From the NCBI RefSeq assembly GCF_037042905.1, contig NC_087262.1, positions 2,232,001-2,266,908 on the forward strand: a stretch of 34,908 nucleotides of DNA, in the 5' to 3' direction. The translations under genes and the position numbers were made by a program. The notes beneath the pieces are model-generated. The model made no database searches, had not been told where the DNA came from, and saw only the letters and a program-made list of their open reading frames with translations. Position 1 is the first letter of the stretch. Every line of letters starts with the position of its first letter. This document shows positions 1,534 to 31,500 of this stretch, piece by piece. This DNA comes from Lytechinus pictus. Its lineage: Eukaryota.

Positions 1534-4500
1534 GTAAAACAAGCCCCTCCCGCAGGTCAAGCCCCTCCCATTTAGTCACTTGAAAGCGGGAGGAATAAAT
1601 ACTATACATTTTTCATTCATTGATAGAGTAAGGCTAAAATAGCTAAATGCTGGATTGTGCAGTATTATGTAAATGTTTAATTTGCAAAGACGAATGAATG
1701 AATATATTGCAATGTATAAACGCATTAATTTATTATTTAATGAATGAATGAATGTTCAAATGAAAAAGGGAATAAATGCAGCACGCATACATGGCATATA
1801 TGTATTAATTATGCGTGAATGACTGACGGACAGACTGAATGAATAAATGAACGAATGAATGAATGAATGAACGAACGAATGCATGAATGAGTGAGTGAGT
1901 GAGTGAGTGAGTGAGTGAGTGAATAAGCGAGTGAGTGAGTGGATGAGTGAGTAGATGAATGAATGAATGAACGAACGAATGAACGAACGAATGAATGAAT
2001 TAATTAATTAATCATCGAATGATGAAAAAGTGAATGAATGAATGAAAGAAAGAAAGAATGAATGAATGAATGAATAACTTAATAAAGAAGTAAATGATCC
2101 AATAATGTTTTCCTTCCTAGCATCATTCAGCACCAACCTCGTCAACGACACAACCGCCGACCTTCCGCTGTTCGACGAGGATGACGGTCTCGAACAAGAC
2201 AGTCATCCATCGGGGCATCGTGCGAAGCGACGAACTGGTCGGTACGCGGCAGGGAGACAGAACTACGTCGAGACAATGATCACTGTGGACGCTGCTATGC
2301 ATTCGTTTCATGGGGAGTCAGCAGTCAACATCTACGTCATTACAATGATTCATATCGTAAGATCATCTTCTTGAATTCATATTTTTTCAGAAAGCAGTAA
2401 GATTTTTTTGTATTTTTATCATTGTTTATTCCATTTATTTTAAAGCAAATTAAGTTCAATTGTTCACAAGGTACAATCATGGCCGAACGCAGATATTTTG
2501 GGGGTTTCATGACATTTACTCCGACGATAATTGCTCCGCTGCAAATTCTACACATTAATGGAATGACCGAGTTCAACCCTGGATTTAACACTATACCCTG
2601 TCCTAAACCTAACATATAACCCTATTGCAACCCTAACCCTATATCTTAGACGAAATCAAGCCCAGAGCAAATGTGTCACCATTTTTTTTCCTATGGAAGG
2701 CAAGGCAAGGCAAAGACATTTACATAATGGGAGATTATAACATTAATCTTATTAATACTGACAATAATTACACTCTAAAATTTATTAGCTCATTGCTTTC
2801 ATACTCTTTCCACCCGCATATTAGTAATCCGACACGAATATCAAGTACGTCTAAAACCCTCATTGACAATATCATTTCAAATGTAACTAACAAAAACTTC
2901 ATAAATGGCATAATTTATTCTGACATTTCGGACCATTTACCTATATTTGTTATTTCTAATCAAGCTAAAATTCAACAACATACAAATAAAAACAAAAAAG
3001 AAATGCGCAGAAAAGAAACCCAACGCAACATCGATGCACTAAAAACTGATTTAGCTGAAGAAGATTGGAATGAAGTATTGAACGAAACTAACGCCGATGT
3101 TGCTTATGAAATATTTATTCAAAAACTCTTACATTATTATAACAAAAACATACCTCTTGTAAAAGATAAGGTCCTTAAAAAGAATAAACAACCATGGATC
3201 ACAAAGGGCATTAAACGATCAATATCAACACGGAATAAACTCTATAAGCAAGCTCTAAAAACTCAATGTAAGGTAAAATTTGACAAATACAAAAAATATA
3301 GAAATAAATTGACATCCATTATTCGTCTATCTCGAAAACTGTACTATTCAAAAAATATAGAGGAAAACGCAAATAATGTTACTTTTTTATGGAAAACTGT
3401 CAACGATCTCTTAGGTAAGAAAAAACATGATATTGCAAATAGTTTTAATGTTGATGGTCAAGAAATTACTAACCCAGAAAAAATTTCAAATGCATTCAAT
3501 GATTATTTCACTAATGTAGGTCCCAATCTGGCCTTAAACATTCATGTAAATGATTCACATTTCACTAAATTCCTATCTCCAGCATGTGAAAACTCACTCT
3601 TTTTAAGACCAACTAATGAACTTGAAATAATTAGTATTGTTCAACAACTGAAATCTAGCAAGTCTTGTGGGCATGACGGAATTAGTGTTTATTTGCTTAA
3701 ACAAATTATTCATTACATTGCTCATCCACTATCCAATATATTTAATCTCTCTCTTTCAACAGGCAAATGCCCGGATTCCCTGAAACTCGCAAAAGTAATA
3801 CCAATTTATAAAAAAGAAGATTCCTCCTTAATCAGCAATTACAGGCCCATATCTTTACTACCATCAATATCTAAATTATTGAAAAAATTATTTATAAACG
3901 ACTCTTTACTTTTCTGAAAAACAATGATATTTTTATTCCTAATCAGTTCGGTTTTAGAGAAGGACACTCAACAGATTATGCCTTATTATATATGTACGAC
4001 AAAATTATTGAAGCTTTCACCAGAAAGGAACATTCGATTGGAATTTACATGGATCTTTCGAAAGCTTTCGATACAATCGACCACAAAATATTAATTCATA
4101 AATTAAAGTCATATGGAATAAGGGGACAAGCACTATCCTGGTTTGAAGACTATTTACATAATCGACAACAATACGTACATTTCCAATCTCAAAACTCACA
4201 AAAACAAAATATCAAGTGCGGCGTACCACAGGGATCAATTCTGGGACCCCTACTTTTTATTATCTATATTAATGATATCATAAATTCATCCCCAATTCTA
4301 AATTTCATAATTTTTGCCGACGATACCAGTATTTTCTATTCCCATTCTAATTTAGATACTCTAACTCATATTCTTAATTCAGAACTCTCTAAAATATCCC
4401 AATGGTTTAAAACAAACAAACTTTCACTTAACATAAGCAAAACCAATTTTATACACTTTCGAGAAGCTAATCCACACTTACCAGCTCCCAATTTATCAAT

Positions 4501-7500
4501 TGACGGTTTACCTCTTACTGAAAAGCACTCTACCAAATTCTTGGGAGTAACAATTGACTCCAATCTAACGTGGAATGAACACATACACAATGTACATACA
4601 TCTATATCAAGAAACATAGGAATAATTTACAAATTAAAAGACTTTCTTTCTGAAAAATCTGGAATTCCTTACCACAATACTTAAAACAATGTCCCTCTCT
4701 TAACTCATTCAAATCATCCTTTAAAACATTTATGACACGCAAATACAATTCTGAATAATTTATGCATATATATAAAAAGAGTTCTACGGGTCTTGGTCAA
4801 TTTTCAATTTTCTTGGTAAATTTTTAATTTCTATCTGATCTCATAAACTGTTACATCAGAAAATGAAAAAAGTTAAGTCATAGTATCAAACTTTGCTATC
4901 ATTTCAAGCTGTATCCTGGAACCATTCAATAATTCCTAATTAATACTACCCCACACCCTCATATACCGACACATATACACGCACGCCCACTCTCAACACA
5001 CACACACACTTATACATACACATACAATTTTAAATATACATTTGCACACGCGCACACGTTTGCACATGCACAAACACATGCAAATACGTCAAATGTGCAC
5101 ATAATATCAGGCATACAAGGTTCTTGCATGTAAATATCGTATTAATAATATCTGTTTATAATTATCAATCAATGCTTGATTTGTACTTCGTTCTTTTTTG
5201 TCTATTTCGCTAATACGTTTTGAGGCCGCTACCCTAGTCAAGCACTGCTTATGGTAGCGGTCTCCAGCATTTTTTTTTTCTACTCAACAAAGTACAACTT
5301 ATAATATTGCAAACTAATACTATCTATATACATTTTTGCAAATGAATGATTATTTGTATTTTTTTTTTGTAAAAAGAAATGTATCACTATTTTTTTCTTT
5401 ATGTTGTACATTATGTTTGTTAATTATTTCTGTTGGAAAAATGCTGAAATAAAATCAAATCAAAATCAAAGGCACATAAAGACAATGGCCCGTATTCTGA
5501 ACTCGGGTTTAAATTAAACCCTGGTTTAAAGTTGTGGTTTAACTATGGAGAGCCAGTTGGTGCACAAATCACTAACAGTACACATCCATTATATTAACTC
5601 ATTTGACACTCAAATTGTCTAAGAATGATAACTGAAGTATTCTGATGTATTTTTCTTCATTATGAAAGCAACATGGAACAAAATAGTAAGCATAGGAGAT
5701 TAAATTTTGGCTCCCCATAATTTTAGCTCATAGTTAGACCGTGGTCTAAGTTAAACCTGACTTCAGAATACGGGCCATAGGGGCGCTCTTGTATTATATA
5801 AAGTGAAATTGAAGAATTCGATGCACACTTGGTGAATTTCGTTACAATTTTCAGTAGAAAAAAAAAGTTTTCAAAATTTCGGGGGTGGGGGCAACAGGTA
5901 TACCAGGACCGTGTTTCATAAAATTGTTATTAAGATCATTGGTATAATGAGCCAAACATTATGAGGGGGAGGGGTCAGATATGGCGGATGGAGAAAAATT
6001 AATTATCGATTGTAGCCGTTTCGGAAATGATTATCAGCAATGCAACAGGTATCGGCTAGAAGCTAGATTGGATTTGTATCTTTCCCACTCTTCAGCTCCC
6101 GAAATCGTTTCCCGAAATATACATATAACAAAATGTTAACGTTTATATTTTATACATGACATAATCTTTTCGAAATTCACTCCTCCCGAAAACATGAGCA
6201 CGGGGTGCCCCAATTTATTTTACCACCCTTTTGAATATCACCTCGTTTTGTTAGTATTTCTTATAAAAGTGAAGTTATGTAATTGGAGAAGATACAAAAG
6301 AAATTGGAAACTGAATCTTTAATAAAGTATAAGATTTAAGAGGGAAAGAACTATGGAAATCAGACAAGTGTGTTTGAAATTACAATTTTTCAGGTCTGCA
6401 TAAATTTCGGCTCTGTCACGCTTCGTGCTCGCATTATTGACTCATGTTGTAAAAATGAAGCTAACCTGTAAGGAATACCCAACCCCAAAATAAAAACAAA
6501 TAAAAAAGAAGACACAAATAGCTGTGAGATCTTCGAGCAGCCACTTAACTCCCTCATCACAGAAAACAATGTTGTTTTAGTCACTCCCCCCCCCCCCCCC
6601 CACTCAACCAATAATACCGAATTCTAATCGACGCCCATGAATAATTAGGTATTTGAATCCCTGAGCCTTGCCAGGTGGTGCAATATCCTTTTTCCCCCTT
6701 TTTTAGAGGGGGGGGGGGAGAAGAAAAAGGGTCATCAAAATTGTCGGGGCGCTCTACCCCCCCCCCCCCGGTACAGGGAACGGAAGGGAAAGTTTATTCC
6801 CATACCTTGAAAACCCCACTTTTGTCACTGTAGGTAGGTTTAGATAATTTGCTTTTGTTTGCACAGGTATCTCCATACGAATTAATGTGCTTCTTTTACA
6901 ATTTCGAACTAATATTGAAAAATAAGAATTCGGTTAAAAGAAATGTTTGCGCAGAGCCCCACCCCGCTCTGCGCTGTGATGGACTACCATCGATTGAACG
7001 ATTGTTCCATCTCCAAATATTGTATTTTTCATAGTAAAACTGTGTCATCGTTTTTTTTTATTCGAAAGCTTAAATTTTATGATTTTTTTTTAATATCATT
7101 TAATTATTTTCATTTTGAAAGCATTGACCAGACGAGGGTGTTTGTTACTTTGTTGGTAATTTCTTGATGAATTTAGCCTTTATATTTTCATGATATTGCA
7201 TCAACAACAACAAAAATCGAAAATGAAAATGTGGGTTTACGTTCTTTGTTGCATATTAAACCAAAGTTAATTTCAGTGCCGAATACCACTGGCATTTGTT
7301 TTTGTAACTATGTCCGTGACAACCATTGAAAGATTTCAGTTTATTATGATTTCAGTTTATTATGATTTCAATATAAAAATTCAAAGACAAGCAAGAGAAA
7401 ATGAATAAGAAATATATACAAATACTTACCTAGACACTATATTAGAACCAGATGTTATGTTTTCACAATTAAAAAAAAAGTAATTTGAGGTCGAGTTAGT

Positions 7501-10500
7501 TATTTTTAAGATTAAATGTTATTCTAGTTCAATTTGCTTGGTTAATTATTGGTGATCTGCAGCGACATCCAATGTCATATATGAGTTACTTATTCATGAG
7601 GTCTGTGATGATTTCAGAATCGATTTTTTTTTTTTTTATATGATTATCTCAAGTTTGCAATTATATCTTGTTATCAATTATTTTTTGCTATAATATTTCC
7701 AAAAGGCTTGAAAATTGGAGAAAAAAAATCATTGAGAAATTGAAAAATTAGCCCGGCAGGCAATACTATACGAAAGGTTTAATCCATCTATTTGAGGAAG
7801 AGTAAAACTTATGACATAACATCTTTTTCTAATACAATGGCTTTCTACATCATACACTCCAATAAGTCGACGACATCTTCGATGGTCGGTCGACTAGTGG
7901 GAGGGGTCTGCATACACATGACACCAATGGAGTTAAGCTCAGCGATGTCAGCTTCATCTCCCATCGACTTCAGAACTCGTCCAAGTTGGTATACATCGCT
8001 CATGGTGGATGTGGCCTCATCATCAAGGGCGCACTCAGGAGCGAGGTGAACGAAGTTTTCCTGTAGATTAATAAAAGACACGACAAGAATCACAATCAGT
8101 GTCACTAGCACGCGAGATGAGAGATTAGAAAAGTTTAAAAATTACTAGATAGATCATGTAGATATACTATAAGTCTAAAGACACAATACCCAAGTCTCAA
8201 GCAATATTTTCTAAACAAAGTAGAACCATACTTACATTTCTTTTGTACTTTTCTTTCCTGTCATCAGAAAGTAAATAGAAGAAAGGCTTCGTCCTTGGAG
8301 AGACGAGCCCAAAGTCGATGATCACTGCCTCCCACTGACCAGTCTGGGTCTTCCTTAGGAGGCAGTTGTCGTCCTTGAGGTCGTTCATGAGGTAGCCCAT
8401 CTCATGCATCTGACCCAAGGAGGTGGAGATGCTGTGGGCGAGCTTAAGCCTGAAAAGAAAAGAAGGAATGTCAGTTTCCCATCGGATAATCAAAGAACTT
8501 TAATAGGCATCTTTCAAAAGAATAAATATACCGCGCTTTTCTCAAGAACATTGTCATTATGGCAACTACATGGATAATAAGGCTAGGTAGCCAATCTAAT
8601 CAAATATAGTTACCATTATATTCGTAAGATCAATACCGTTGGCCAGTTATATCACACATGTATAACTTCAGTGATATACGAACAGTTCATGCAGTATGTT
8701 TGGGTGTGAGTTTAACTATTCGACACTGAAATAACATTGAAATTTTGTTCATATTATAAATTTCTAGTCATGCTAATAGAAATTTCAATATATAAAAGTT
8801 ACTCACCATTGCTTTTTAGTCAGATCTAACTCGTCCATACCTCTATCCAATGTCCAAGACTCTCCATTGGTCACGTCACCGATGAACTCCATTGCTAGGC
8901 CTACGTAACCCGGACTTGTCTGGAGACATCACAGGTAGCTTGGAAAGCAGTCATTTCGACCCAAGGTCTCTAAGAGGTCAGCTTCCTCAAGGATGTAGGC
9001 CATCTGTCAAGTTTAACATCATAAGAAGATGTTATCAACTTTCTTCGTTTTAAGATATTTTTTTAAAGGCCCACTACAGAATATTATTCGGAAGATTGAG
9101 TTCACTCGAAACGATCATATCCATTCAAGAGTAGTTCTTGAACTACCCTGGATAAAATATATATAATTCGCCCGTATGGGGATATTTGAGTCAAGGCCTG
9201 GATACATTTAAAGATTGGTGAGCTTATAGAAAATGAGCTTACCTGTCTGTTCATCCCATCAATGTCGGCAGGGAGTTTGAAGTTCTTGACAGCAATGGGC
9301 TCGTTGGTGATCTTATGCCTGTAGAGATGGACAGTACCGCTCATGCCACTGCCCAGGATGACATCATCACCTCCTGGATGGAAGGACTCAAGGTCATCCA
9401 TGCTCCATACTCGGGAGTTGGCTTGGGCAGTGCTCTGGCTCACGGTGGCTACAACCCCACCCACTGATGGTGATCTGCAAAATACAGACATTGACGGTGT
9501 TTAATATATGCATTTTATATCAATTTAAAGATATTCCCTGACAATTATACTACCAACTAAAATTTCAAAGTATATCTGTCATGATATTACTTTGAAAGTC
9601 TTACCGTGGACTAGGAAGAGGTGATGAAACAATAGCCACTGAGCTCTGAACGGCAGGGGTAGAAGAAGTATGGTCGCTGACTTCAAGCACCGAACCACTA
9701 GACTCTGGACTTGGTGTTGGTAATCTATGATTTAGACAGATAGAAATATAATAAACTGGGAACATTTACGACATCTGAGTGGAATTACTAAATAATGAAT
9801 CTACACTTCATTATTTAGTAAACATGGGAGATTTGCTTGCATTAAAATTTTGAAATTATAATAATATATGTTCTGTTCTTGTTGTGTATTTTCGGTTAGA
9901 AAATTTACTCATAGGTTTCAATCTTTTTTATTTTCAATTGAATCTTCAAATAAGCACACATATTATTTGAAAGTGAGTTCTGCCTATAATTATGTTCATC
10001 AGCTTACCCAGTGGGCACAGCTAAGGTGTCAATAGGTGCTATGTCGGGTGTAGTGGTGGGACATGGTGCTAAATCAGGTGTACTAGAGGGAATGGAGGGT
10101 GTAAATGGAGATTCTGATGTAGAAATGGAAGAGGTGTTGTTGTCAGATTCTCCAGTGTCAGAAAGTTCCGAGGAAGATGTTTCGGAGCTAGACTCGGAAG
10201 AGCTGAGGGATTTGATATATATATATATATATATTATCTGATCAATGTCCATGTTGAAAGGTTCTTTCTTTATTATTTCATTTTAATTTTATATTTCTTA
10301 GATATATTTTCAATACATCTTTATTTTAAAAAGGGATTATTTCTTACCAAGAGACACTAGGAGTCTGACTGCTGACAAGAGAAGAAGCAACGGCAGGCTG
10401 AAAAGTCAGATCCTAAAAAAATAGAATATTAACAAATAAAGCTATCCACCAATTCATCGGAAAAGACCTATAATTTTGTTTAAAAAAAATTATGGTAATG

Positions 10501-13500: not shown

Positions 13501-16500
13501 TAGGTTATAAAATGCGCATGGCTACTCCCTTTATTACGCAATAAAGTACAAATAATGACGTCACTGAATTATGCTAAGTATGGTGAGACTACCACATATC
13601 GACCACCTCTTTTGAAACCGACCACCTTGCGCGCGTTAAAATTATTGCGTATTACAAACGATACGCGCGGGAGAGTAGGCGCAGTGTCCATAGAAACGGA
13701 AAGAATCAATTTTACGAGATAAAAAGAAGCAACAAAAAGTAAAAATTTAGTAGAATTAATCAAAATTGTATTGACCAGACCCAAACCTCGCTGATTTTCT
13801 TGACTCATTGAATAATTTATTAAATCATCATTCTGTTCAAAACAAAAAGTGTATAATAATGGGAGATTTTAATTATGATCTTTTATCGAGTAATATTAAT
13901 ATTTCCACACATGAATTTTTAGAGACATTCCTCTCTGCTTCCTTCCTGCCACTCATTTCTAAACCCACTAGAATAACCAGAACTTCAGCAACTCTCATTG
14001 ACAACTTCTTTTCAAATATACAGTCAGAGTTTAATGCTGGAATTGTTCTGTCAGATATATCCGATCATTTTCCGATATTTATGCATTACACTGATAAATT
14101 TCAACCAAATAATACCCCCAGTGATTTTGCAAAAAGACGCGTGTTTAGTGACGAAAACATTGATCGTTTGAAGTTAAGCCTTGAGGAAGAAACTTGGCAT
14201 GATGTATTTAATAACGAAGATGTTAATCATTCGTATGATAAATTTATTGACATTTTCATGTCTCACGTAAATCGAAATATTCCTTATTCTACACATAAGT
14301 CTAAAAATTATAAGAAGTCGCCAAGACTTCCTTGGATTACGAATTCGATTCTGCGATCGATAAATCGAAAAAATAGGTTATACTATAAACACTTGTCTAA
14401 ATGTACTGATCAAACAAGGATTCAGTATACCAGTTATAAGAATGTACTTACAAGTGTCATCCGCACAGCAAAAAAGGTATATTATCATGACCAATTTAAT
14501 CGCTGTCAAAATGATCTAAGACGAACATGGAAGATAATAAATTCTACCCTTCACAATGGATCAAAGCATCCCAAGATTACTAAGCTTAGGCATAATAATG
14601 CTATAATTGAGAATACAATTCAAATGGCAAATATTTTTAACAATTATTTTTCCAATGTAGGTTTTAACCTCGCTAGCCATATACCATCAACAGATCACTC
14701 TTTTCATAATTATCTGACTGATAGAAACGAAAGTTCTTTATTTTTCTCTCCTACCTACCCACAAGAAATAATCAAAATCATATATGGGCTGAAATTGAAT
14801 AAGAGTGCAGGATTTGATGGAATCGATAACAACCTTCTGCAAAAAACTATGAATTATATTGTTCATCCTCTCGTTCATATATTCAATCTGTCTTTATCAT
14901 CTGGACATATTCCAGAATCAATGAAAATTTCGAAAATAATTCCGGTTTTCAAAAAGGGTGATAGAGAGCTAACAAATAATTATAGACCCATTTCATTGCT
15001 AACAACTTTGTCCAAAATCCTTGAAAAGTTGGTCCACATTCGTACAACAAATTTCTTTCATAAGCACAATATTCTTTCTAATACTCAATATGGCTTCCGA
15101 GAAAAGAGTAGCACTACTCATGCAATACTTTCTTTAGTTCAAAAGGTAGCTAAAGAAAGTGACCTGTCTTCTAATACGGTTGGTTTGTTCATAGATTTTT
15201 CTAAAGCATTTGATACTGTTGATCACGACATCCTTCTTTTCAAACTTTCTCATTACGGCATTCGGGGAAAACCATTGATATGGTTTAGGAATTATCTTAA
15301 AGGGCGCTCCCAGTTCGTTTCACTTAATGACAATTTCTCTGAACACAAGCCTGTCCTTTGCGGAGTTCCGCAGGGCAGTATTCTGGGTCCACTTTTGTTC
15401 ATAATTTATATAAATGACATTGAAAAGTCGTCTAGGTTACTTCAATTCATTCTTTTTGCTGATGATTCAAATATATTTTTCTCACATCATGATCCAAAAC
15501 AATTGACGCAAATGTTAAATAAAGAACTTAAAAACGTTGCAAATTGGATAAAAGCAAACAAATTATCACTAAACCTTGATAAAACTAGTTATATGCTGTT
15601 TAGTAATAAATTTGAAGCTTTACCAAATGATGTAATTTTTGATGGTACTGTCATCCAAAGGGTCCGATCAACTCGATTCCTTGGGCTAATCATAGATGAC
15701 AAGCTTTCCTGGAAACCGCACGTTGACAATGTCTGCAAAATCATTGCTCGAAATACTGGGATCCTTGGTAAATTAAAACAATTCTTACCACACACTATTA
15801 TGTTATCCTTGTATTCTACATTAATCCTCCCTTACTTAAATTATGGACTTATTGCTTGGGGTAATGCAACAATTTGGCTGATCGATAGACTATTTATATT
15901 GCAAAAAAGAGCTATTCGTGTAATAAATAATGCAGATTTCCGGGCACATACAAATAATCTATTCTTGAAAAATAAAATTCTGAAAATTAAAGAACTGTAC
16001 ACTTTTCAACTTGGACAGTTTATGTTCAAGCTTAATACTAAACAACTACCTATGCCTCTAATTGATATGTTTTTTAAAAATAGTTCGATTCATAGTCACT
16101 TCACACGCCAAGCAAACTCTTTTCATTTACCACTGAACAGAACATCATTTGCTCAAAAAACGTTTATTGTTATGGGTCCTAAGCTATGGAATTCTTTTAC
16201 AATTGATATAAAACAAAGCAATTCTATACAAATGTTCAAAAAACGACTTAAATCATTTCTCCTGAATTATTACTAAATATTTAATTCATCAATTACAAAT
16301 TAAGCCTTCAGTGCTAAGAAGGAAACCTTTAATAATTTGTATACACTATGAGTGATTCGTATATTTTTTAATATGATGCATATGATTTGTATAATAATGT
16401 ATATATTACATAATGTAAATATTGTTATTTGTTTGTTTGTTTGTTTGTTTGTTTTTACAAAAGAGCAATTCAGTTGCTATAAACACGTAATTACAACATT

Positions 16501-22500: not shown

Positions 22501-25500
22501 AACAAAAGTCGTGTGAACATATCCAGGATGACTCTGACTCCTGGGGAGCGTTTCATCAACATTTTCATCCGACAAGTTGTCAGATCTGACATCTTTCCTT
22601 GAATTTGATTGGCTGAAAAGCACAGTTACTATGGTTACTGTCGGAAAAATGGGACTTGTCGGATAAAACGTCCGACAAGTCATTTCATGAAACGCTCCCC
22701 TGATATAGGCATAAGATGAATTTCAAATTCAGATCCAAATCAGCGTTTGAAAGTGGGAAATTTTACCGTTTTATAATCCACACTTTCTTTCCCCAAATTT
22801 AAATGGATGTTTTCTACCGGAAGCGGGACAGAGCAATGAACAGAAACAGTGACACTGTCTCCATGAAAATATCATTTGGTCGAGGAAAATGTAACATCAA
22901 TACCTTGAATTGTCAAAGATCAAGTTTATCATCATGACTAAAAGACAGCTGCAATGCCTCGGAAATGAAATATGGTTATCTGGGAATGTCTCTGGAATCT
23001 CCTTGATGTCGTTACAGGGTAGCAATTTAAATTTCATGACAGATTGGTAACCCCCTGCCAGCCCCATAATGGTCAGTCTGACTTTCACAAACAAATGGAC
23101 TATTTCTCCCCATTAAAGTTGTAGGCCCTAAACATCATAAGACGGATCTGGGCTTCTGTAAACGAGCAGATATGTTATTCTATGGAAATGTTGATGCATA
23201 TGCAATGATTGTACTTTCAGAAAAATTCATCTTTGAGTAGTAAGGAAGGGTACGTGCCAAAAGACATGATAGATCTCATTCTATATTTCTTTCAGAGAAA
23301 GACAGCATCCATTTTAAAAAAATACATTAATGAAGGATCGGCGAACCGCTTTAAAATATGAAAACCAATCTGAATTCCTCAAAGATACATTATCTAATAA
23401 TGTAAATATGTTTATATATACAGTGCGTCCCAGAAAAAACGAAACCGAGATTAAGCGATGATTTATCATAACTTAATCACAAATACAATAGACAAATGAC
23501 CTACCAATGTAAAGCTTAGAATCTCCTCTTTCATCTGATATTACTTCGATTATTCCTCCTTCACGCATGAGTGAGCAAAAACAATTTGAAGAAAGGATAC
23601 CAAAAACTCATTTGGCGGGGGTATCTGAATTTTATAAAGAAAATCACATGCCTAAAAAGTTTAATATCTGCTCTTTAATTTGATACCTTAATCACAAAAA
23701 ATGGTCAAGAAGTAAAAAAGTTACGTTCCCTCGAAACAATGCTTGTATTTCCATAATTTCATTAAATAAACGTGTTTTCACCGGTTTCCCACAGAAGCTA
23801 TCGCATGGTTAACAAAAGACTTCATGCATGGCTGATCGTCAACAAAACGGAGTGTCGAGTGGGTTTGAAGGCTAGCCTGTAAAACCTCTTCATTTTGTGA
23901 AATTATTGAAATTCAAGCCTTATTTCAAATAACCAGAACTTTCTTATTTTTAGACCATTTTCTGTAATTGAGGTATCAAATTAAAGAGCAGATATTGAAC
24001 TTTTTAGAAATGTGGTTTTCTTTTTGAAACCCAGATACAGCCCGCCAAATGACTTTTTGGTATCCCCTCTTCAAATTGTTTTTGCTCACTCATGCGTGAA
24101 TGAGAAATAATCTAAGTAATTTCAGATGAAAGAGGAGATTCTAAGCTTTACAATGGTAGGTCATTTGTCTATTGTACTTGTGATTAAGTTATGATAAATC
24201 ATCGATAAATCTCGGTTTCGTTTTTTGTGGGACGCACTCTATATATATATTTATATACGTAAACTAGATCAAGAGTTCTATATTATATACGTTTTAATTA
24301 AAGGAATAAGCATATTTAATCGTTATATCAGAGTATGATAATAAAGTTTTGTTCATGGTTTCAATCTGAAACATTTTTCTCAATAATTATTGACTCGCCA
24401 AAAAAACCATCTGAAAACAAACCTATTAACTCTTCATCTGAACTCGTTTTATACCACAAAACGCGCTTTGTAACCTCTAAAAAAGCACTATAATATCCAG
24501 TAATTACTATCTGATTATTTGTTTTATTTTGAAATCAAAATTTCCATGACTTGTCTCCTACAGGTTACGCTCCTGTTACTGGTATGTGCGCTATCACAAG
24601 AAGCTGCTCTCTAAACAAAGATGAAGGTCTCTTATCGTCATTTGTGATCGCTCATGAGTCGGGTCACGTGTAAGCTTTCATCCTCGTATTCCATCTATAA
24701 TTCCTTAACATAATATATATTTATGTATAAGAATGTCTTTTCAAGTTAACTTAAATTTTGACGATTATGTGATACTAAAACGATTATTATGAATTGTTGT
24801 CCCTGTTAAAGTGCCAAAGTCAGTTCCTGTATATTGTATCTTTTGTAATATTAATTTTTACCCTCAATGCGATATTCCATACTTTCATAGTATCAATATC
24901 ATAGTGCCAATCCCGGTGCCAATATCTAGTCTACAGAATCAATGGCTGTGTATTTTGTGTATATACTTTGATGGCAGATAAATTATAAAGTTTAGTTACT
25001 TTATAAAGTGTATAATATTTTGTTTTAGGAATCGTCAAAGATGTTTTTTTTTTTAGATTTCCTTGTATTTGAACTATTTCCCTGTATAAGATTATACTTT
25101 GACTACCATTATATATTTCTTATAAAATTGAAAGTAAAGAACGACGCATGTACCTAATGTGAAGTTAGGAGAAAGAAAAATCCACACCTATCAGATTTCA
25201 AAACAGTCATTTTACTTTTGTTTAAATCATTTTTCAATTATTATCTTAATTAAACGAAAATTATACAGTCATACATAATTGGCGCTAACTTGATAAATTT
25301 GTTCACAGCTTTTGTAACCTTCGAGAAGTAAACAATTATGGTGTCTACATGGGTACTCTGCAATTTATGGTACAAGTGCATTTCATTTCGGGCATTGTTT
25401 CTGTATAAGAAACGATATAAATCTGTAGTTTAGTTTCATAATATGGAAACGATTATATGAAACTCCATCAAGACACAACGTCTTATTTCAATTCCAATTA

Positions 25501-28500
25501 GTACATTTAAAATCCAGGTCCCACAGCAGGCGGATTTGTAAATAGAGAAAATCAAACGAGCATATTATGCTGTCAAGTCCGTCAGAGTCGTATGTAAAAT
25601 AAGAATGTTTTGACCTTTTAAAGTCTGCAGATGAGTGAGCCGATGATGAAGCACACACTTACTTTTTATTTTGTTATTATTATATGAAATATTATTGTAT
25701 GAAATATTTCAAACAATTTTGTTTTATATGACAATAAGAAAATTATTGATTGATTCATAATCCGTTACAACAATTGAAAATCCACATGTCCACAGTCATG
25801 GCAGTGGAATTAAAAACCATTTGGATTTGTGTGCATTTTAAAGAGGGAAAAATTAAATATTTCGTGTTATAAAGTGCAAGGAATGTGTGACATTGGGGTA
25901 AATCCGTGACGTCATACTGGGGGATAGAAAATAGATCACCCCCCTTGAACAAAATGTTCACTGCTCGGATTAATGCCAGTGGTTTGTGACGTCATCATTT
26001 CTCTTTTTATATAGCACCTGTGTTCTGCATAATTTTTTTTTTTTTTTAAAGGCCAAACTTTAAAAAGCCACAACGTTCTTTATTTCACACCCGACGTTTG
26101 CCGGAACTTTCAGCATCATACCTGTGTATTTTTTTTATTTTTCTCTCTCTCTATACATTCAAATTCGCATGTTCATAAAGTGGGCGTGACCTAAATAGAT
26201 TTTCAATTACCCAAAAGGGCTTCCACTGGGCAATGATATTAAGAAATTCTATGGAGCAAATTGCCCCTGAGATTTAGAAATATTCTTTATTTTACTCATG
26301 TAAACACCACTTTTGTGACTTACCACCATTTTCTGCCCTCCTCCAATCTCATCAAAAGTTTTGGCATGGAGCACGACGGCCAAGGAAACACGTGTGAAGA
26401 TGATGCGTCTCGAGGTTCCATCATGGCGCCCGTCGTTATATCGACCTACATTCACTACTTCTGGTCGAAGTGTAGTCGTATCGAGCTCAACCGATACCTA
26501 TCGTGAGTATCCGATACCTTTAACCCCCTTTCTCTCTTCCTTCCATTCCTCCGTCCGTCTTCTTCTGCTTCTAATCCATAGTTTCGGGATGGAACACGAC
26601 GGCGTCGGCAACACCTGTAAGCGCGACCAGTTACGGGGCTCTATCATGTCGCCGGTCGTCAAGGCCACTTACACCCGGTACTTCTGGTCGGTTTGCAGTC
26701 AGTACGAGCTTCACCGGTATCTCTCGTGAGTAGGTTCTGCTTTGTACATCCGGTTTGCCATATGGATTCGGTTTTACTTTCTTTCGGTTTTCTTGTCATC
26801 CGACTCACCCTCGCATCCGACTTATCCGTTCATCCGACTAGTTTCCTCTTTCAAATTTTATTTTCGTTTTGAGTTTTTCGTTATTTCATTTTCATTTGTG
26901 ATTTTGGAGCATGGTGCTTGGTTTAATGGTATTTTTTTATTTGATTGATCTAACTTGATTCCTAATCTGTTTATCGTTGATCGTTTGTTAGTGTTTGTAA
27001 CCTTGTATATTCGTCTACTTGTATTCAGTGTTGTTTTGTACAATTATATATTCAGTTAAATTTATAGACTCATTTTATCAACTCTTTAAGTGGTTGGTTC
27101 ATTGTTCATAATGTATTGGTTAGAGGAAGACCAAATCAATGGAAAGGTTTTCTGAAGAGCGAATGATTGGTCTGAACGAGGAACGCAATCTTTCGTAGGA
27201 GGGAAACTGACTGCTGTAGTCAGTTTATTGCAGCAATAAATGATGATGATGGAATATGAAAGGTTCTGTGTTAATATCATTTCTCATTCTTTCTTACTCC
27301 CAAGTTTACCTTGCGCTATATCGTTGTATGAAGCAGAAAGTTTTCATTAAACCATGAGGATGTATTATTGTGTGACTCACTTGTTTGTCAAACAAAGTTT
27401 AAGTTTTCTCAACCATTTCATCTCGTGTTCAGTTGGGAAATCATATTAATAAAATATTTACCATAATATTCATTGCGTGTTCTGATGATATTGGATCTTA
27501 CCTGTGGATCGAATTCTATCATTGCCATCCTCGTGTAGACCCTATGTTATCATGTGACTCGTTATTTGTGTTGTGTTGTATTTGGCCGATGTTTGTGTCT
27601 GGTTGTATTTGGTTTTGTTCGGGATTGCTTTCTTCTGACTTTAACAATTCTATGGGAGTGTGTATTTGAGTTTTGTCAGACGTGTATCAATCAGATATGA
27701 TTATTTACGTCTGGGACCGACCTTTAACGTCACCATCCGAAAGACGTGACCAGGGCTCGAACCTCGAACCTTATGCATCAATTTGTAACTTCCCCACATA
27801 GCTTGGATTACAGGCGCACGCCACAACGCCCAGGGAGTGTGCATGTATTGCAAATCAGTAGAACAGTATAACATTGTTTGACAGTTAACAGTATAGACCT
27901 ACATTGAAGGCATCCCTGCTGGAAACCTCAAAGTCACACAGTGTTTTCATCGTGTATTCAGTGTGTTCACACTCACAGTGCATTCATTGTATATTCAGTG
28001 TGTTCACAGCGTGTCCACAGTGTGTTCACCGTATATTCAGTGTTTTCACAGTGTTCATTGTATATTCAGTGTGTTCACTGTATATCCAGTGTGTCCACAG
28101 TGTGTTCACTGTATATTCAGTGTGTTCACAGTGTCTTCATTTATATTCAGTGTGTTCACAACGTGTTCACAGTGTGTTCACTGTATATTCCGTGTGTCCA
28201 CAGCGTGTTCACTGTATATTCAGTGTGTCCACAGTGTTTTCATTGTATATTCAGTGTGTTCACAGCGTGTCCACAGTGTGTTCATTGTATATTCAGTGTG
28301 TTCACAGCGTGTCCACAGTGTGTTCACTGTATATTCAATGTGTTCACAGCGTGTCCACAGTGTGTTCACTGTATATGCAATGTGTTCACAGCGTGTCCAC
28401 AGTGTGTTCACTGTATATTCAGTGTGTTCACAGCGTGTTCACAGTGGCCCGTATTCTAAAGTCGGGTTTAACTTAAACTCAGGATTAAGTATGGATAGCC

Positions 28501-31500
28501 AATTGTTACATAAATCAATAACAGTAGAGATATCATATTTCAGCTCATTTGGCTTTCAAATCATTCATAATTATATAAGAAGTGTAAATGGATGATTGTC
28601 TTCACCATCAATGAATCAGGAAAGAACACAATAAACATAAGAAACATAGAACTTAATAAAAATGTTGACACTTTTGGCTTCCCATAATTTTAGCACAGAG
28701 TTAGACCATGGTCTAAGTTAAACCTGTCTTCAGTGTGTATTCAGTGTGTTCACAGCGTGTCCACAGTGTGTTCACAGTGTATTCATAGTATATTCAGTGT
28801 GTTCACAGCGTATTCATTGTATTAACGGTCTTTTGACAGTGGGACACACAGTATATTCACATTGCGTTTAGTGTTTTTCATAGTGTTTTCAAACTGTGTT
28901 CACAGTGTGTTCATTATGTGTTCACAGTGTGTTCAAATTGTATTCACAGTGACTCCAAATAATGTTCACAGTGTTTTACAATGTGTGCACAGTGTGTCCA
29001 TGTGACGGACTAAATTTAAGTGTATGAATAATTTCACACTTTGGACACAGTGTGTACACATACAGGACTCTGAATATGAGATTTACAATGTTTGATTTTA
29101 GCATTGTAAAAAGAACAGTGTAAAAATGCATGGATTCGCATCATGTTCAACACTGTGAACACACTTTGTGATACACTGTGACACTATGAATTTTTCCACT
29201 AGGGATTAGGCCCGACAAATTTCGTCATTCGTTTTACTTCGTTTCACGGAATATAACAAATATTAATGCATGACAAACACTGGAAGAAATGGAGTTTTAT
29301 TGTACGAACAACATGAGAAATGATTAACATTCACCAGGAACATAACATAGTTATATTTACACTGATTTCCCCCAAATAATATGCATGGTCTGATTGTTGA
29401 AAAGCAAGAACATGAATTGCTGGAAAGTGAAATAATACTACTACTAATAATAACAATAATAATGATGATAATAATGATAATAAAAAACCACGAAGCATAT
29501 CACTTATTCATGAGGATTATATGTTTCCTGTTGTTTCTTTTCACCAATTAACAACATTGATAACATTTACTTTTCTGATAATTGTATAAGCACTTAGAGG
29601 AATCTGAATGTTGAAACGGTTATCCGTACTCACTTTAATTCCTTTTTCTAGTCGGTACTATTGCTTGTGGGATGATCCTTTCGATAGCGGATATCCGGAG
29701 GTCCGGCAGTATCCGGGTCGGCGCTATACAATGGATGAACAATGTCGGTTTGATTTCGGTCACGGCTACCGCACGTGTACCGCGGTAAGTGACAGTTTTT
29801 GGAGGTGAAACCTTTTCAGTGGCAGTTTTGATAATCGGGAATGTGATTTATTCAAATCCTAACAAGCAGAACAATTTCCTTCAGAATTTATATGGGAATA
29901 TACTGTACATGTATAAGTTTTAAGAACATGGATTTCCTTAATCAAAATGTGAGCAAGATTTTTGTTCAGAGTTCATTTGATACGTCTAAAGTTGTGCAAT
30001 TGATCCTTTAGGATTTTCGTAAGGAGAAAAAATTATTGTTACCTATATGCATAAAACTAAAGTTGTTGAGAATATCAATTATGCAGTCGAAGGAATAAAG
30101 ATTATGATATTTGAATAATTTTATGGCAGTCGTTTTAACAATGTTTTAACGTTTCTCAATTTGAATGAAATTCAACAGTTTTATTACAATCCATGTCAAG
30201 AGTTGTGGTGCATGCATCCGACCAGTTACAACTGCCGTACACGTAACGGACCACCACTGGATGGGACCGCCTGTGGTCCGGGCATGGTAAGGTGTAGCTT
30301 ATGGTCACTATACTGAAAGTTCCCCGTGGAATGAAACAAGGCTTATCTTCCGCTCACAAATATAGCTTTAAAAAAGATGTGATAAACTTTATGGCTCCAA
30401 ATATGATGCAGTCAGCTATGTAACTACTCATAGGTGAACATGGTAAAGAAAAGTTAAGGTTATGCTGTGAGCGGAACGTCAAACCCTTATTTCATTTATG
30501 GGCTTAATAATTGCCATTTACTAACCAACTTCTTCATCTTTCATTCTCGCTTTACCCAACCGGAAACAGTTCAATGATTACGACAAATGCGACCAACTGT
30601 GGTGTATGCACTACCGCAAAAGATATGTTTGTCGGACTAAGAAAGGTCCGCCGTTAGACGGCACAGAATGTGGTCCGGGAATGGTAAGAAAATGGTCGGA
30701 TTTCCCGCCTGTCGGATGACGATGTGGAATTTCTTAGGCTCGTGATACAGCAAAAAAAAAGCTCTTCAACATTTTGTTTTACGGGGGTGAATTCTTAGGG
30801 GGGTTTGGGTATCAGAAAATTAAAGAGGAGTTGAACACCTGTACCCCCCCCCTCTGCGTATGCTACTGTATAGGATTATGGGTTTGCTTTCATATTAGAG
30901 GGATTTAAACTAGATCAACACTGTTTCCAGAACATACGTCTTCTGAATACTGATGATGTCATTTTATGAAGATTCTGTATACGATAGTGGTTGGGCTAGT
31001 AGTTGGATTTAATTGTTTCAACCTTTATAATAAAATAGAAAAATATGAAAAATGCTAAAGAAAGATGGGCCAAAATTGTATTACAAAATTGAAAATGAGG
31101 ACGATATAATATATCAGAGTATTTCTTGGTCTACATAAATTGAACCAAGGGAAATCTCTCTTACATTAAGACGATTCCTATTAATGTTCATAAAGTATAT
31201 CGTTCCACCTTATAGAGAAAATGAACTTTATCTTTGTTATCGTTTTTTTGGTTTCTTGCTCATTTAAGTGACACATTGTATATATTAGAACCTTATGTAT
31301 TCATTATTTTAAGAAAGAGAACTTGGCGGGTTAAAATAGTTCCTGGATTCCACATTGTCTCTGATTGGTCGGGTTTCCCTATTGAATTCTGCACGAGAGC
31401 ACCTTGCATAGATCCTTGTGGTTTTGCACATTATCGGAGAAGTACTACATCAGGCAGACTGGAATGAAAATGCAAAATGTATATATTACATTCATTATTT

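Follow-up and report, generated by a model that had tools for sequence, protein, structure and literature searches.

How does a gene that carries two versions of one exon side by side keep them out of the same messenger RNA, when the intron between them is only 79 nucleotides (nt) long? This question is raised by a 34,908-nt stretch of the Lytechinus pictus genome (NC_087262.1, positions 2,232,001 to 2,266,908; hereafter the window), whose + strand carries part of an ADAMTS metalloprotease gene with two adjacent alternative exons, which we call F1 and F2. A reading of the letters of the window alone (the sequence-only reading) had proposed that the intron between these exons enforces the choice by steric exclusion, its donor and its branch point lying too close together. 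Our results indicate that the two exons are used one at a time, that the intron between them is found retained in otherwise spliced RNA, and that its anatomy is consistent with a spacing too short for splicing.

The host gene is a Lytechinus ADAMTS2/3/14-like (procollagen-N-proteinase-like) protease. Its exon-sized open frames match the Reprolysin, ADAMTS_CR_2 and TSP_1 profiles, and the closest named proteins are the 'ADAMTS 3-like' proteins of Lytechinus variegatus, L. pictus and Diadema setosum, followed by vertebrate ADAMTS14/3. The F2 peptide appears in the L. pictus protein XP_063969476 exactly as it is encoded in the window. Spliced joins and a tblastn comparison with the L. variegatus protein placed the upstream constitutive exon, E, at 24564–24669 (+ strand, as for all features of the F1/F2 region given below), where it encodes ...VIAHESGHV with the first two zinc histidines. 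Exon F1 (26359–26502, encoding ...NRYL) and exon F2 (26582–26725, encoding ...HRYL) are both 144 nt long and in phase 1, and the downstream constitutive exon, G (29652–29784), encodes RYYCLWDDP.... F1 and F2 are identical at 98 of 144 nt and at 33 of 47 amino acids, and both align to positions 143–188 of the 200 positions of the Reprolysin profile, which cover the end of the zinc motif (G..HD), the Met-turn (SIMAP / SIMSP) and the C-terminal helix; F1 carries the third zinc histidine together with the Met-turn and the end of the catalytic domain. The two are tandem-duplicated, mutually exclusive exons, and the segment that they swap holds the Met-turn and the loop after it as well as the third zinc histidine. 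The choice between them probably alters the substrate pocket of the protease, and a transcript with both copies would be nonsense.

To follow the use of the two exons, four RNA runs were compared with positions 24400–27500. The end point avoids a short interspersed nuclear element and a tandem repeat farther downstream, so that joins to exon G show as loose ends. Run X1 consists of contigs from organism A, with both exons identical to the window, and run X4 of contigs from organism B, whose differences from the window match L. variegatus (including an R>Q change and two extra intron C's). Run X23 holds raw reads from organism B at ~1–2x depth, and run X20 holds raw reads of ribosomal RNA-depleted RNA. 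In run X1, exon E was joined both to F1 (24669>26359, depth 32.6) and to F2 (24669>26582, depth 17.7). The same 28 letters, TCGGTACTATTGC..., which match the start of exon G, stood behind both 26502 and 26725, and these identical letters behind the two donors mean that E-F1-G and E-F2-G both exist. The E-F2 join was also found in X4 and in X23 (one read). A join of F1 to F2 (26502>26582) was seen in none of the four runs, at limited depth and with contigs that drop rare forms; frequent F1-F2 spliced reads, which the sequence-only reading had taken to be incompatible with its proposal, were thus not found. The RefSeq isoforms of L. variegatus tell the same story, as isoform X1 has F1, isoforms X2 and X3 have F2, and none has both. 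Among 1.84 billion representative proteins, the sole urchin entry with two F-type stretches is the read-through open reading frame (ORF) of a genomic scaffold. The pair therefore shows the behavior of its class, in that adjacent alternative exons are each joined to common flanks, one or the other is used, and the intervening intron is not excised, with rare joins possible at this depth. The exclusivity that had been predicted from the letters is borne out by the four joins (E-F1, E-F2, F1-G and F2-G) and by the annotated isoforms.

The intron between F1 and F2 (26503–26581, GTGAGTA...CATAG) was seen retained and never seen removed. In run X1 a contig spans 26473–26611 unbroken through the intron at depth 11.1, compared with 32.6 for F1 and 26.4 for F2, and the retained form makes up about one fifth of the gene's transcripts (a rough figure from contig word depths). 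The flanking introns of this run have a depth of 0 upstream and of 2 downstream, the latter starting only at 26752. Since the E-F1 join accounts for all of the F1 depth and no contig passes from the F2 donor into the downstream intron, the retained RNAs are spliced everywhere but at the 79-nt intron. One contig of run X4 runs from 26382 to 26724 straight through the intron and is then spliced to exon G, two reads of X23 cross the intron, and X20 has zero reads on the gene. The retained intron was assembled in two species.

Read into the retained intron, the frame continues ...CTA TCG TGA, and the stop at intron bases 2–4 (26504–26506) ends the frame-1 ORF with ...NRYLS. An RNA that includes both exons keeps the intron and with it a premature TGA far upstream of later exon junctions, so that nonsense-mediated decay (NMD) or truncation is possible, and NMD could in principle police double inclusion. 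The sequence-only reading had noted, correctly, that both exons are multiples of 3 and had concluded that NMD cannot act on their joint inclusion. This holds for F1 spliced to F2, where 144 + 144 nt would keep the frame, and fails for the retained product that is actually seen.

The anatomy of the intron can be set beside this behavior. The dinucleotide AG occurs in it just twice, at 26506 (within the donor GTGAGT) and at 26580 (the acceptor), and the AG-free zone amounts to 72 nt. Its adenines are at 26506, 26509, 26514, 26516, 26522, 26523, 26545, 26573, 26574, 26578 and 26580, and only two motifs fit yTnAy. The better candidate for a branch point is TTAAC (26520–26524), with A26523 at intron position +21, 58 nt before the 3' end. 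The other, CTAAT (26571–26575), has its A26574 only 7 nt from the last intron base. A weak alternative candidate is A26545, a lone conserved adenine within TCCAT (26542–26546; +43 / -36) that has no yUnAy fit. Every intron adenine outside the last 9 nt lies at most 43 nt from the F1 donor, and an adenine at -18 to -35 is found in none of three sequences (the window, L. variegatus and an urchin from the Tara Oceans data described below). Positions 26525–26579 are 87% pyrimidine over 55 nt, and all 55-nt segments with at least 87% pyrimidine on both strands of the 34,908 nt lie inside this intron (mean 0.50, standard deviation 0.093). The part of this tract that is conserved, together with the F2 3' splice site, extends over 26533–26581 (intron +31 to +79) and contains UCUU and CUCUCU motifs. 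A long polypyrimidine tract with an AG exclusion zone thus precedes the F2 acceptor, as in other exons of the steric interference class. These observations agree with the layout given by the sequence-only reading, which had pointed to the A26523 motif 21 nt from the F1 donor, to about 50 nt of nearly pure pyrimidine without AG up to the F2 acceptor, and to CTAAT as too close to the 3' splice site; A26545 is absent from that account.

The intron is also short for its surroundings. It is far shorter than ~40 other introns sampled in the genome, which include 27 introns of CCT chaperonin paralogues (327–4352 nt) and actin introns (~200 nt or more, as read off in the same genome); the gene-structure paper of Tu et al. 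2012 gives no minimal-intron figure for sea urchin. Among the other introns of the gene within the window, the next shortest has 283 nt (30287–30569). It separates the members of a second duplicated pair in the disintegrin-like ADAMTS_CR_2 region, H1 (30179–30286, 108 nt) and H2 (30570–30683, 114 nt), both of which are multiples of 3. RefSeq isoforms use H1 or H2, and a perfect TACTAAC is located at 30519–30525, 45 nt upstream of H2.

Because the AG-free zone reaches back to the F1 donor, the F2 branch point must sit inside the 79 nt, as a branch point farther upstream would pick an earlier AG. All usable adenines lie at most 43 nt from that donor, below the minimum donor-to-branch spacing of ~50 nt that comes from work on alpha-tropomyosin, simian virus 40 (SV40) small-t and OGDH (PMC7969005) and is cited for vertebrates (PMC7969005, PMC5740500). 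Steric interference is therefore the best reading of the F1-F2 intron, and we give it slightly better than even chances, with the branch point at a predicted position. The adenines that are far enough from the acceptor (+7 to +43, with TTAAC at +21 as the best) would be too near the F1 donor, and U1 small nuclear ribonucleoprotein (snRNP) at that donor and U2 snRNP at the branch site could then not serve the same intron. Such a clash on the spacer would leave F1 to join only to G, and F2 only to E. The long CU tract would serve a distant branch point as the extended polypyrimidine tract it requires, and its motifs make it a probable binding site for PTB-type regulators of the F1:F2 ratio as well. 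Where both exons are selected, the intron would stay, the TGA would be read, and the product would presumably be lost to NMD or truncated. An intron that is retained and never excised in otherwise mature RNA of two species fits what the steric model predicts. Overall, the interpretation offered by the sequence-only reading is partly supported.

Comparisons among urchins showed which parts of the intron are held constant. L. variegatus (L003) has the same F1/F2 pair with an intron of 81 nt (two extra C's), the L. pictus-like run X1 has one extra C (80 nt), and a Tara Oceans scaffold from an urchin of a different genus (L001; exons 85–90% identical) has F1, a 78-nt intron, and F2, with the same TGA after F1. 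In Diadema setosum (L002 33727–34482), a single F1-type exon is followed by a 612-nt intron to G, and no trace of F2 was found in this locus at E<=1e-3. As Diadema has only an F1-type exon, F2 either arose after the split of its lineage or was lost in it, and the duplication is not common to all echinoids. The window and the Tara urchin share ~51–53% identity in flanking intron farther from the exons, and 67% and 77% at third codon positions of F1 and F2, respectively. Intron positions +9 to +30, which contain TTAAC, are only 29% identical, and positions +31 to +79 reach 88% (43/49). The CU tract is thus strongly constrained, with the 5' part free in sequence and the length kept at 78–81 nt. 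The 5' part of the Tara intron has another yUnAy motif, CTTAT, with its A at +16. A26545 and the TAAY near the 3' end are conserved, as is nearly everything around them, and the counterpart of CTAAT in L001 is GTAAC. Beyond F2, a block at 26783–26825 (TTCGGTTTTCTT.TCATCCGACT...CATCCGACTT), 58–100 nt past the F2 donor, is identical to the Tara urchin at 38 of 43 positions (88%), compared with ~53% in the nearby intron, and is a putative splicing-regulator site. This block carries repeated CATCCGACT, and ATCCGA also occurs just after the F1 donor, at 26509–26514.

The reach of these comparisons was set by the available sequences. A degenerate F2 pattern had zero matches in Joint Genome Institute (JGI) metagenome contigs, and a protein search with the F2-containing ORF returned nothing beyond the Tara scaffold L001. 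A further Tara scaffold (L004) has a single F-type exon and is uninformative for the spacer, and for the brittle-star protein P0152 there is no recorded locus. The protein P0001, derived from L001, reads the TGA after F1 as W and is an artificial F1-intron-F2 fusion; a TGA-reassigned code had evidently been applied when genes were called on this eukaryotic metagenome scaffold.

Our arguments for steric interference need to be interpreted with caution, and our confidence stays only slightly above even because the branch point is a predicted one, 43 nt does not fall clearly short of the invertebrate limit, and retention is silent on its own cause. Several observations weigh against the reading. 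The position of the branch point is predicted from sequence only, and the sequence of the best candidate, TTAAC, is not conserved in the Tara urchin. An alignment in the register of TACCTT that would make TTAAC conserved was tried and rejected: a shared 6-mer within +/-6 nt also arises in 14% of composition-preserving shuffles, and we therefore give this match no weight. The adenine that is conserved, A26545, lies 43 nt from the donor, and a donor-branch spacing of 43 nt can be spliced in flies and worms. To our knowledge, no donor-branch threshold is known for echinoderms. The F1/F2 pair is present in only two independent lineages, Diadema being without F2. The RNA evidence is thin, consisting of two contig sets and of raw reads at ~1–2x in one run, and rare F1-F2 joins are possible. 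Retention means that the intron is kept, whatever the cause, and at about a fifth of the transcripts of run X1 it makes exclusivity leaky, as both exons can still be chosen. Finally, human introns of 43–56 nt can be spliced (10.1101/784868, PMC4675715).

The most serious competitor, which we still consider unlikely, is that the intron is left unspliced for a cause other than distance. A PTB-like repressor on the CU tract, or a poor or unusual F2 branch site that is functional only in certain cell states and in combination with the E donor, would make exclusivity a matter of regulated competition and the short length a relic of the duplication. The 49-nt CU tract with UCUU and CUCUCU is indeed conserved far past the needs of U2AF, a second conserved intronic block stands 3' of F2, and the region of TTAAC is unconserved. 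The H1/H2 pair is either/or in annotation despite an intron of 283 nt with a perfect TACTAAC, so this gene can keep two exons apart even where their spacer is not too short. Control by PTB is known for pairs of this kind (PMC3060452; for alpha-actinin, as cited in PMC7969005). However, repression of the F2 acceptor alone leaves unexplained the RNAs in which the F2 donor is used and the 79-nt intron is kept. A length held at 78–81 nt while the 5' part diverged freely also weighs against this view, and in known cases repression and steric block coexist. We think it considerably less probable that the retained RNA has a purpose of its own as a third product, serving as a detained-intron reservoir or as the mRNA for a truncated protease ending ...NRYLS after the catalytic domain. 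Its abundance in run X1 relative to F1 and F2, its occurrence in two species in otherwise fully spliced form, and a stop exactly at the domain border would suit such a role, but any GTGAGT donor in this phase brings the TGA with it, and the F2 donor has the same. Moreover, no annotated isoform ends at this TGA, a stop upstream of many exon junctions is the usual configuration for NMD, and the depths come from contigs of one run.

Two further explanations involve the sequence of the spacer in other ways. Competing long-range RNA pairing between a docking site and a selector, of the kind found in insect Dscam or 14-3-3zeta, would have the spacer intron for a partner; it might be read into the conserved intronic blocks 3' of F2 and into a purine-rich stretch near 27116–27165 that pairs with the CU tract at -30 kcal/mol. 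Yet the best duplex between this intron and the flanking introns (-31.1 kcal/mol) falls within the range of shuffled sequences (-29.9 +/- 2.3, RNAduplex), none of the 25 longest inverted repeats in 24670–29650 involves the F1-F2 intron, and the local fold has z = -0.99. The inverted-repeat scan, the local fold and the RNAduplex scan were thus all at chance level over 24670–29650, a scope that leaves G-U-rich or farther partners outside, and pairing of this kind strikes us as very improbable. The other explanation is incompatibility of U2 and U12 splice sites, to which we attach almost no credence. It draws on a resemblance of GTATCC (26507–26512) and CCTTTAAC to U12-type 5' splice sites and branch sites, for which the consensus is RTATCCTT / TCCTTAAC. 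The donors are all U2-type (GTGAGTA at F1 and F2, GTAAGC at E), and the branch-like motif lies ~10 nt from GTATCC and 58 nt from the acceptor, where U12 branch sites are 10–26 nt from the acceptor. As the observed joins use U2-type GT..AG sites exactly, the U12 reading is effectively refuted.

If steric interference does separate F1 from F2, it is possible that urchins have kept a two-layer fail-safe, although we propose this only tentatively and hold it to be rather doubtful. In the first layer, the length of 78–81 nt and the CU tract would make F1-F2 splicing impossible. In the second, the GTGAGT donor in phase would ensure the TGA stop, and a pair of exons that are multiples of 3, which is normally invisible to NMD, would become policed by it. 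Should this be true, and should other short-spacer pairs of Lytechinus share the design, it would be a possible general echinoderm solution for in-frame duplicated exons.

Other observations were made in and around the window. In run X4, a contig matching 27112–27203 extends through ...GCAATGATGATG before its join to exon G (window 27112–27250; L003 62608–62723), a sign that the F2-G intron may hold an extra exon or an alternative 5' end in X4. After the ATG repeat, L. variegatus has GTATAT and the window has GGAATA (no GT), and the extra exon may therefore be species-specific. In each of the four runs, very abundant RNA (word depth up to ~3200), flanked left and right by unrelated sequence, matches a segment of ~33 nt at 25592–25624. 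The segment is probably a repeat or part of an abundant transcript encoded elsewhere, and it forms an inverted repeat with 26054–26085. Long reverse-transcriptase/endonuclease-like frames (ORFs of non-long-terminal-repeat retrotransposons) occur at 2637–4681 and 13775–16273 within introns of the ADAMTS gene. A kinase-like gene lies antisense at ~7848–9500 and beyond, and the corresponding position in L. variegatus (L003 43737–44890) holds a Pkinase gene.

Compared with known systems, F1/F2 is an echinoderm addition to an established class, that of exclusive exons with a distant branch point or a too-short spacer; ~9% of human mutually exclusive clusters meet the spacing criterion of this class (PMC5740500). 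The nearest likeness is to alpha-tropomyosin exons 2/3 (Smith & Nadal-Ginard 1989, as cited in PMC7969005 and PMC4165533). As far as these citing papers describe it, this is an alternative pair whose downstream branch point is far from its acceptor and 41 nt from the upstream donor, with a long pyrimidine tract, an AG-free zone and no mutual splicing. According to the same accounts, alpha-tropomyosin differs in its longer intron and in a branch point 177 nt upstream, whereas in F1/F2 the whole intron is 79 nt and the branch point is a predicted one. F1/F2 is also unlike alpha-tropomyosin in its host, an echinoderm protease, and in that the retained-intron by-product is seen. OGDH exons 4a/4b with their 'megaPPT' (PMC7969005) likewise form a homologous pair in which the intron length stays in a narrow evolutionary range and a long pyrimidine tract is bound by regulators. 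The OGDH branch adenines lie 25–41 nt from the upstream donor, under the ~50-nt threshold, in an experimentally mapped cluster of four within an intron of 118–131 nt. In contrast, F1/F2 offers two candidates, a good motif at +21 and a weak adenine at +43, and a length conservation drawn from three sequences only.

In Caenorhabditis elegans, five clusters (egl-15 5B/5A, let-2 9/10, bet-2, gly-5 and gly-6) have spacers too short for excision, and all of their exons are multiples of 3 (PMC4165533). As in F1/F2, a frameshift can then not police double inclusion. The worm spacers, at 14–30 nt, are under the minimal worm intron of ~40 nt, unlike the 79 nt of F1/F2, which is not below any known minimal intron size; the argument for F1/F2 thus rests on the placement of the branch point. 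Pairs repressed by PTB (alpha-actinin NM/SM, and CaV1.2 8a/8; PMC3060452, and PMC7969005 ref. 36) resemble F1/F2 in having a CU-rich tract with UCUU upstream of one exon, and the putative link to them lies in motif content. What F1/F2 adds to the class is a failure product, a retained intron with an immediate stop, that is a natural read-out, along with a conservation pattern that sets a 5' part constrained in length but not in sequence apart from a CU tract constrained in sequence. Our results leave the accepted view of the control of such exon pairs as it was, and F1/F2 would extend the steric rule with a compact and testable example from echinoderms.

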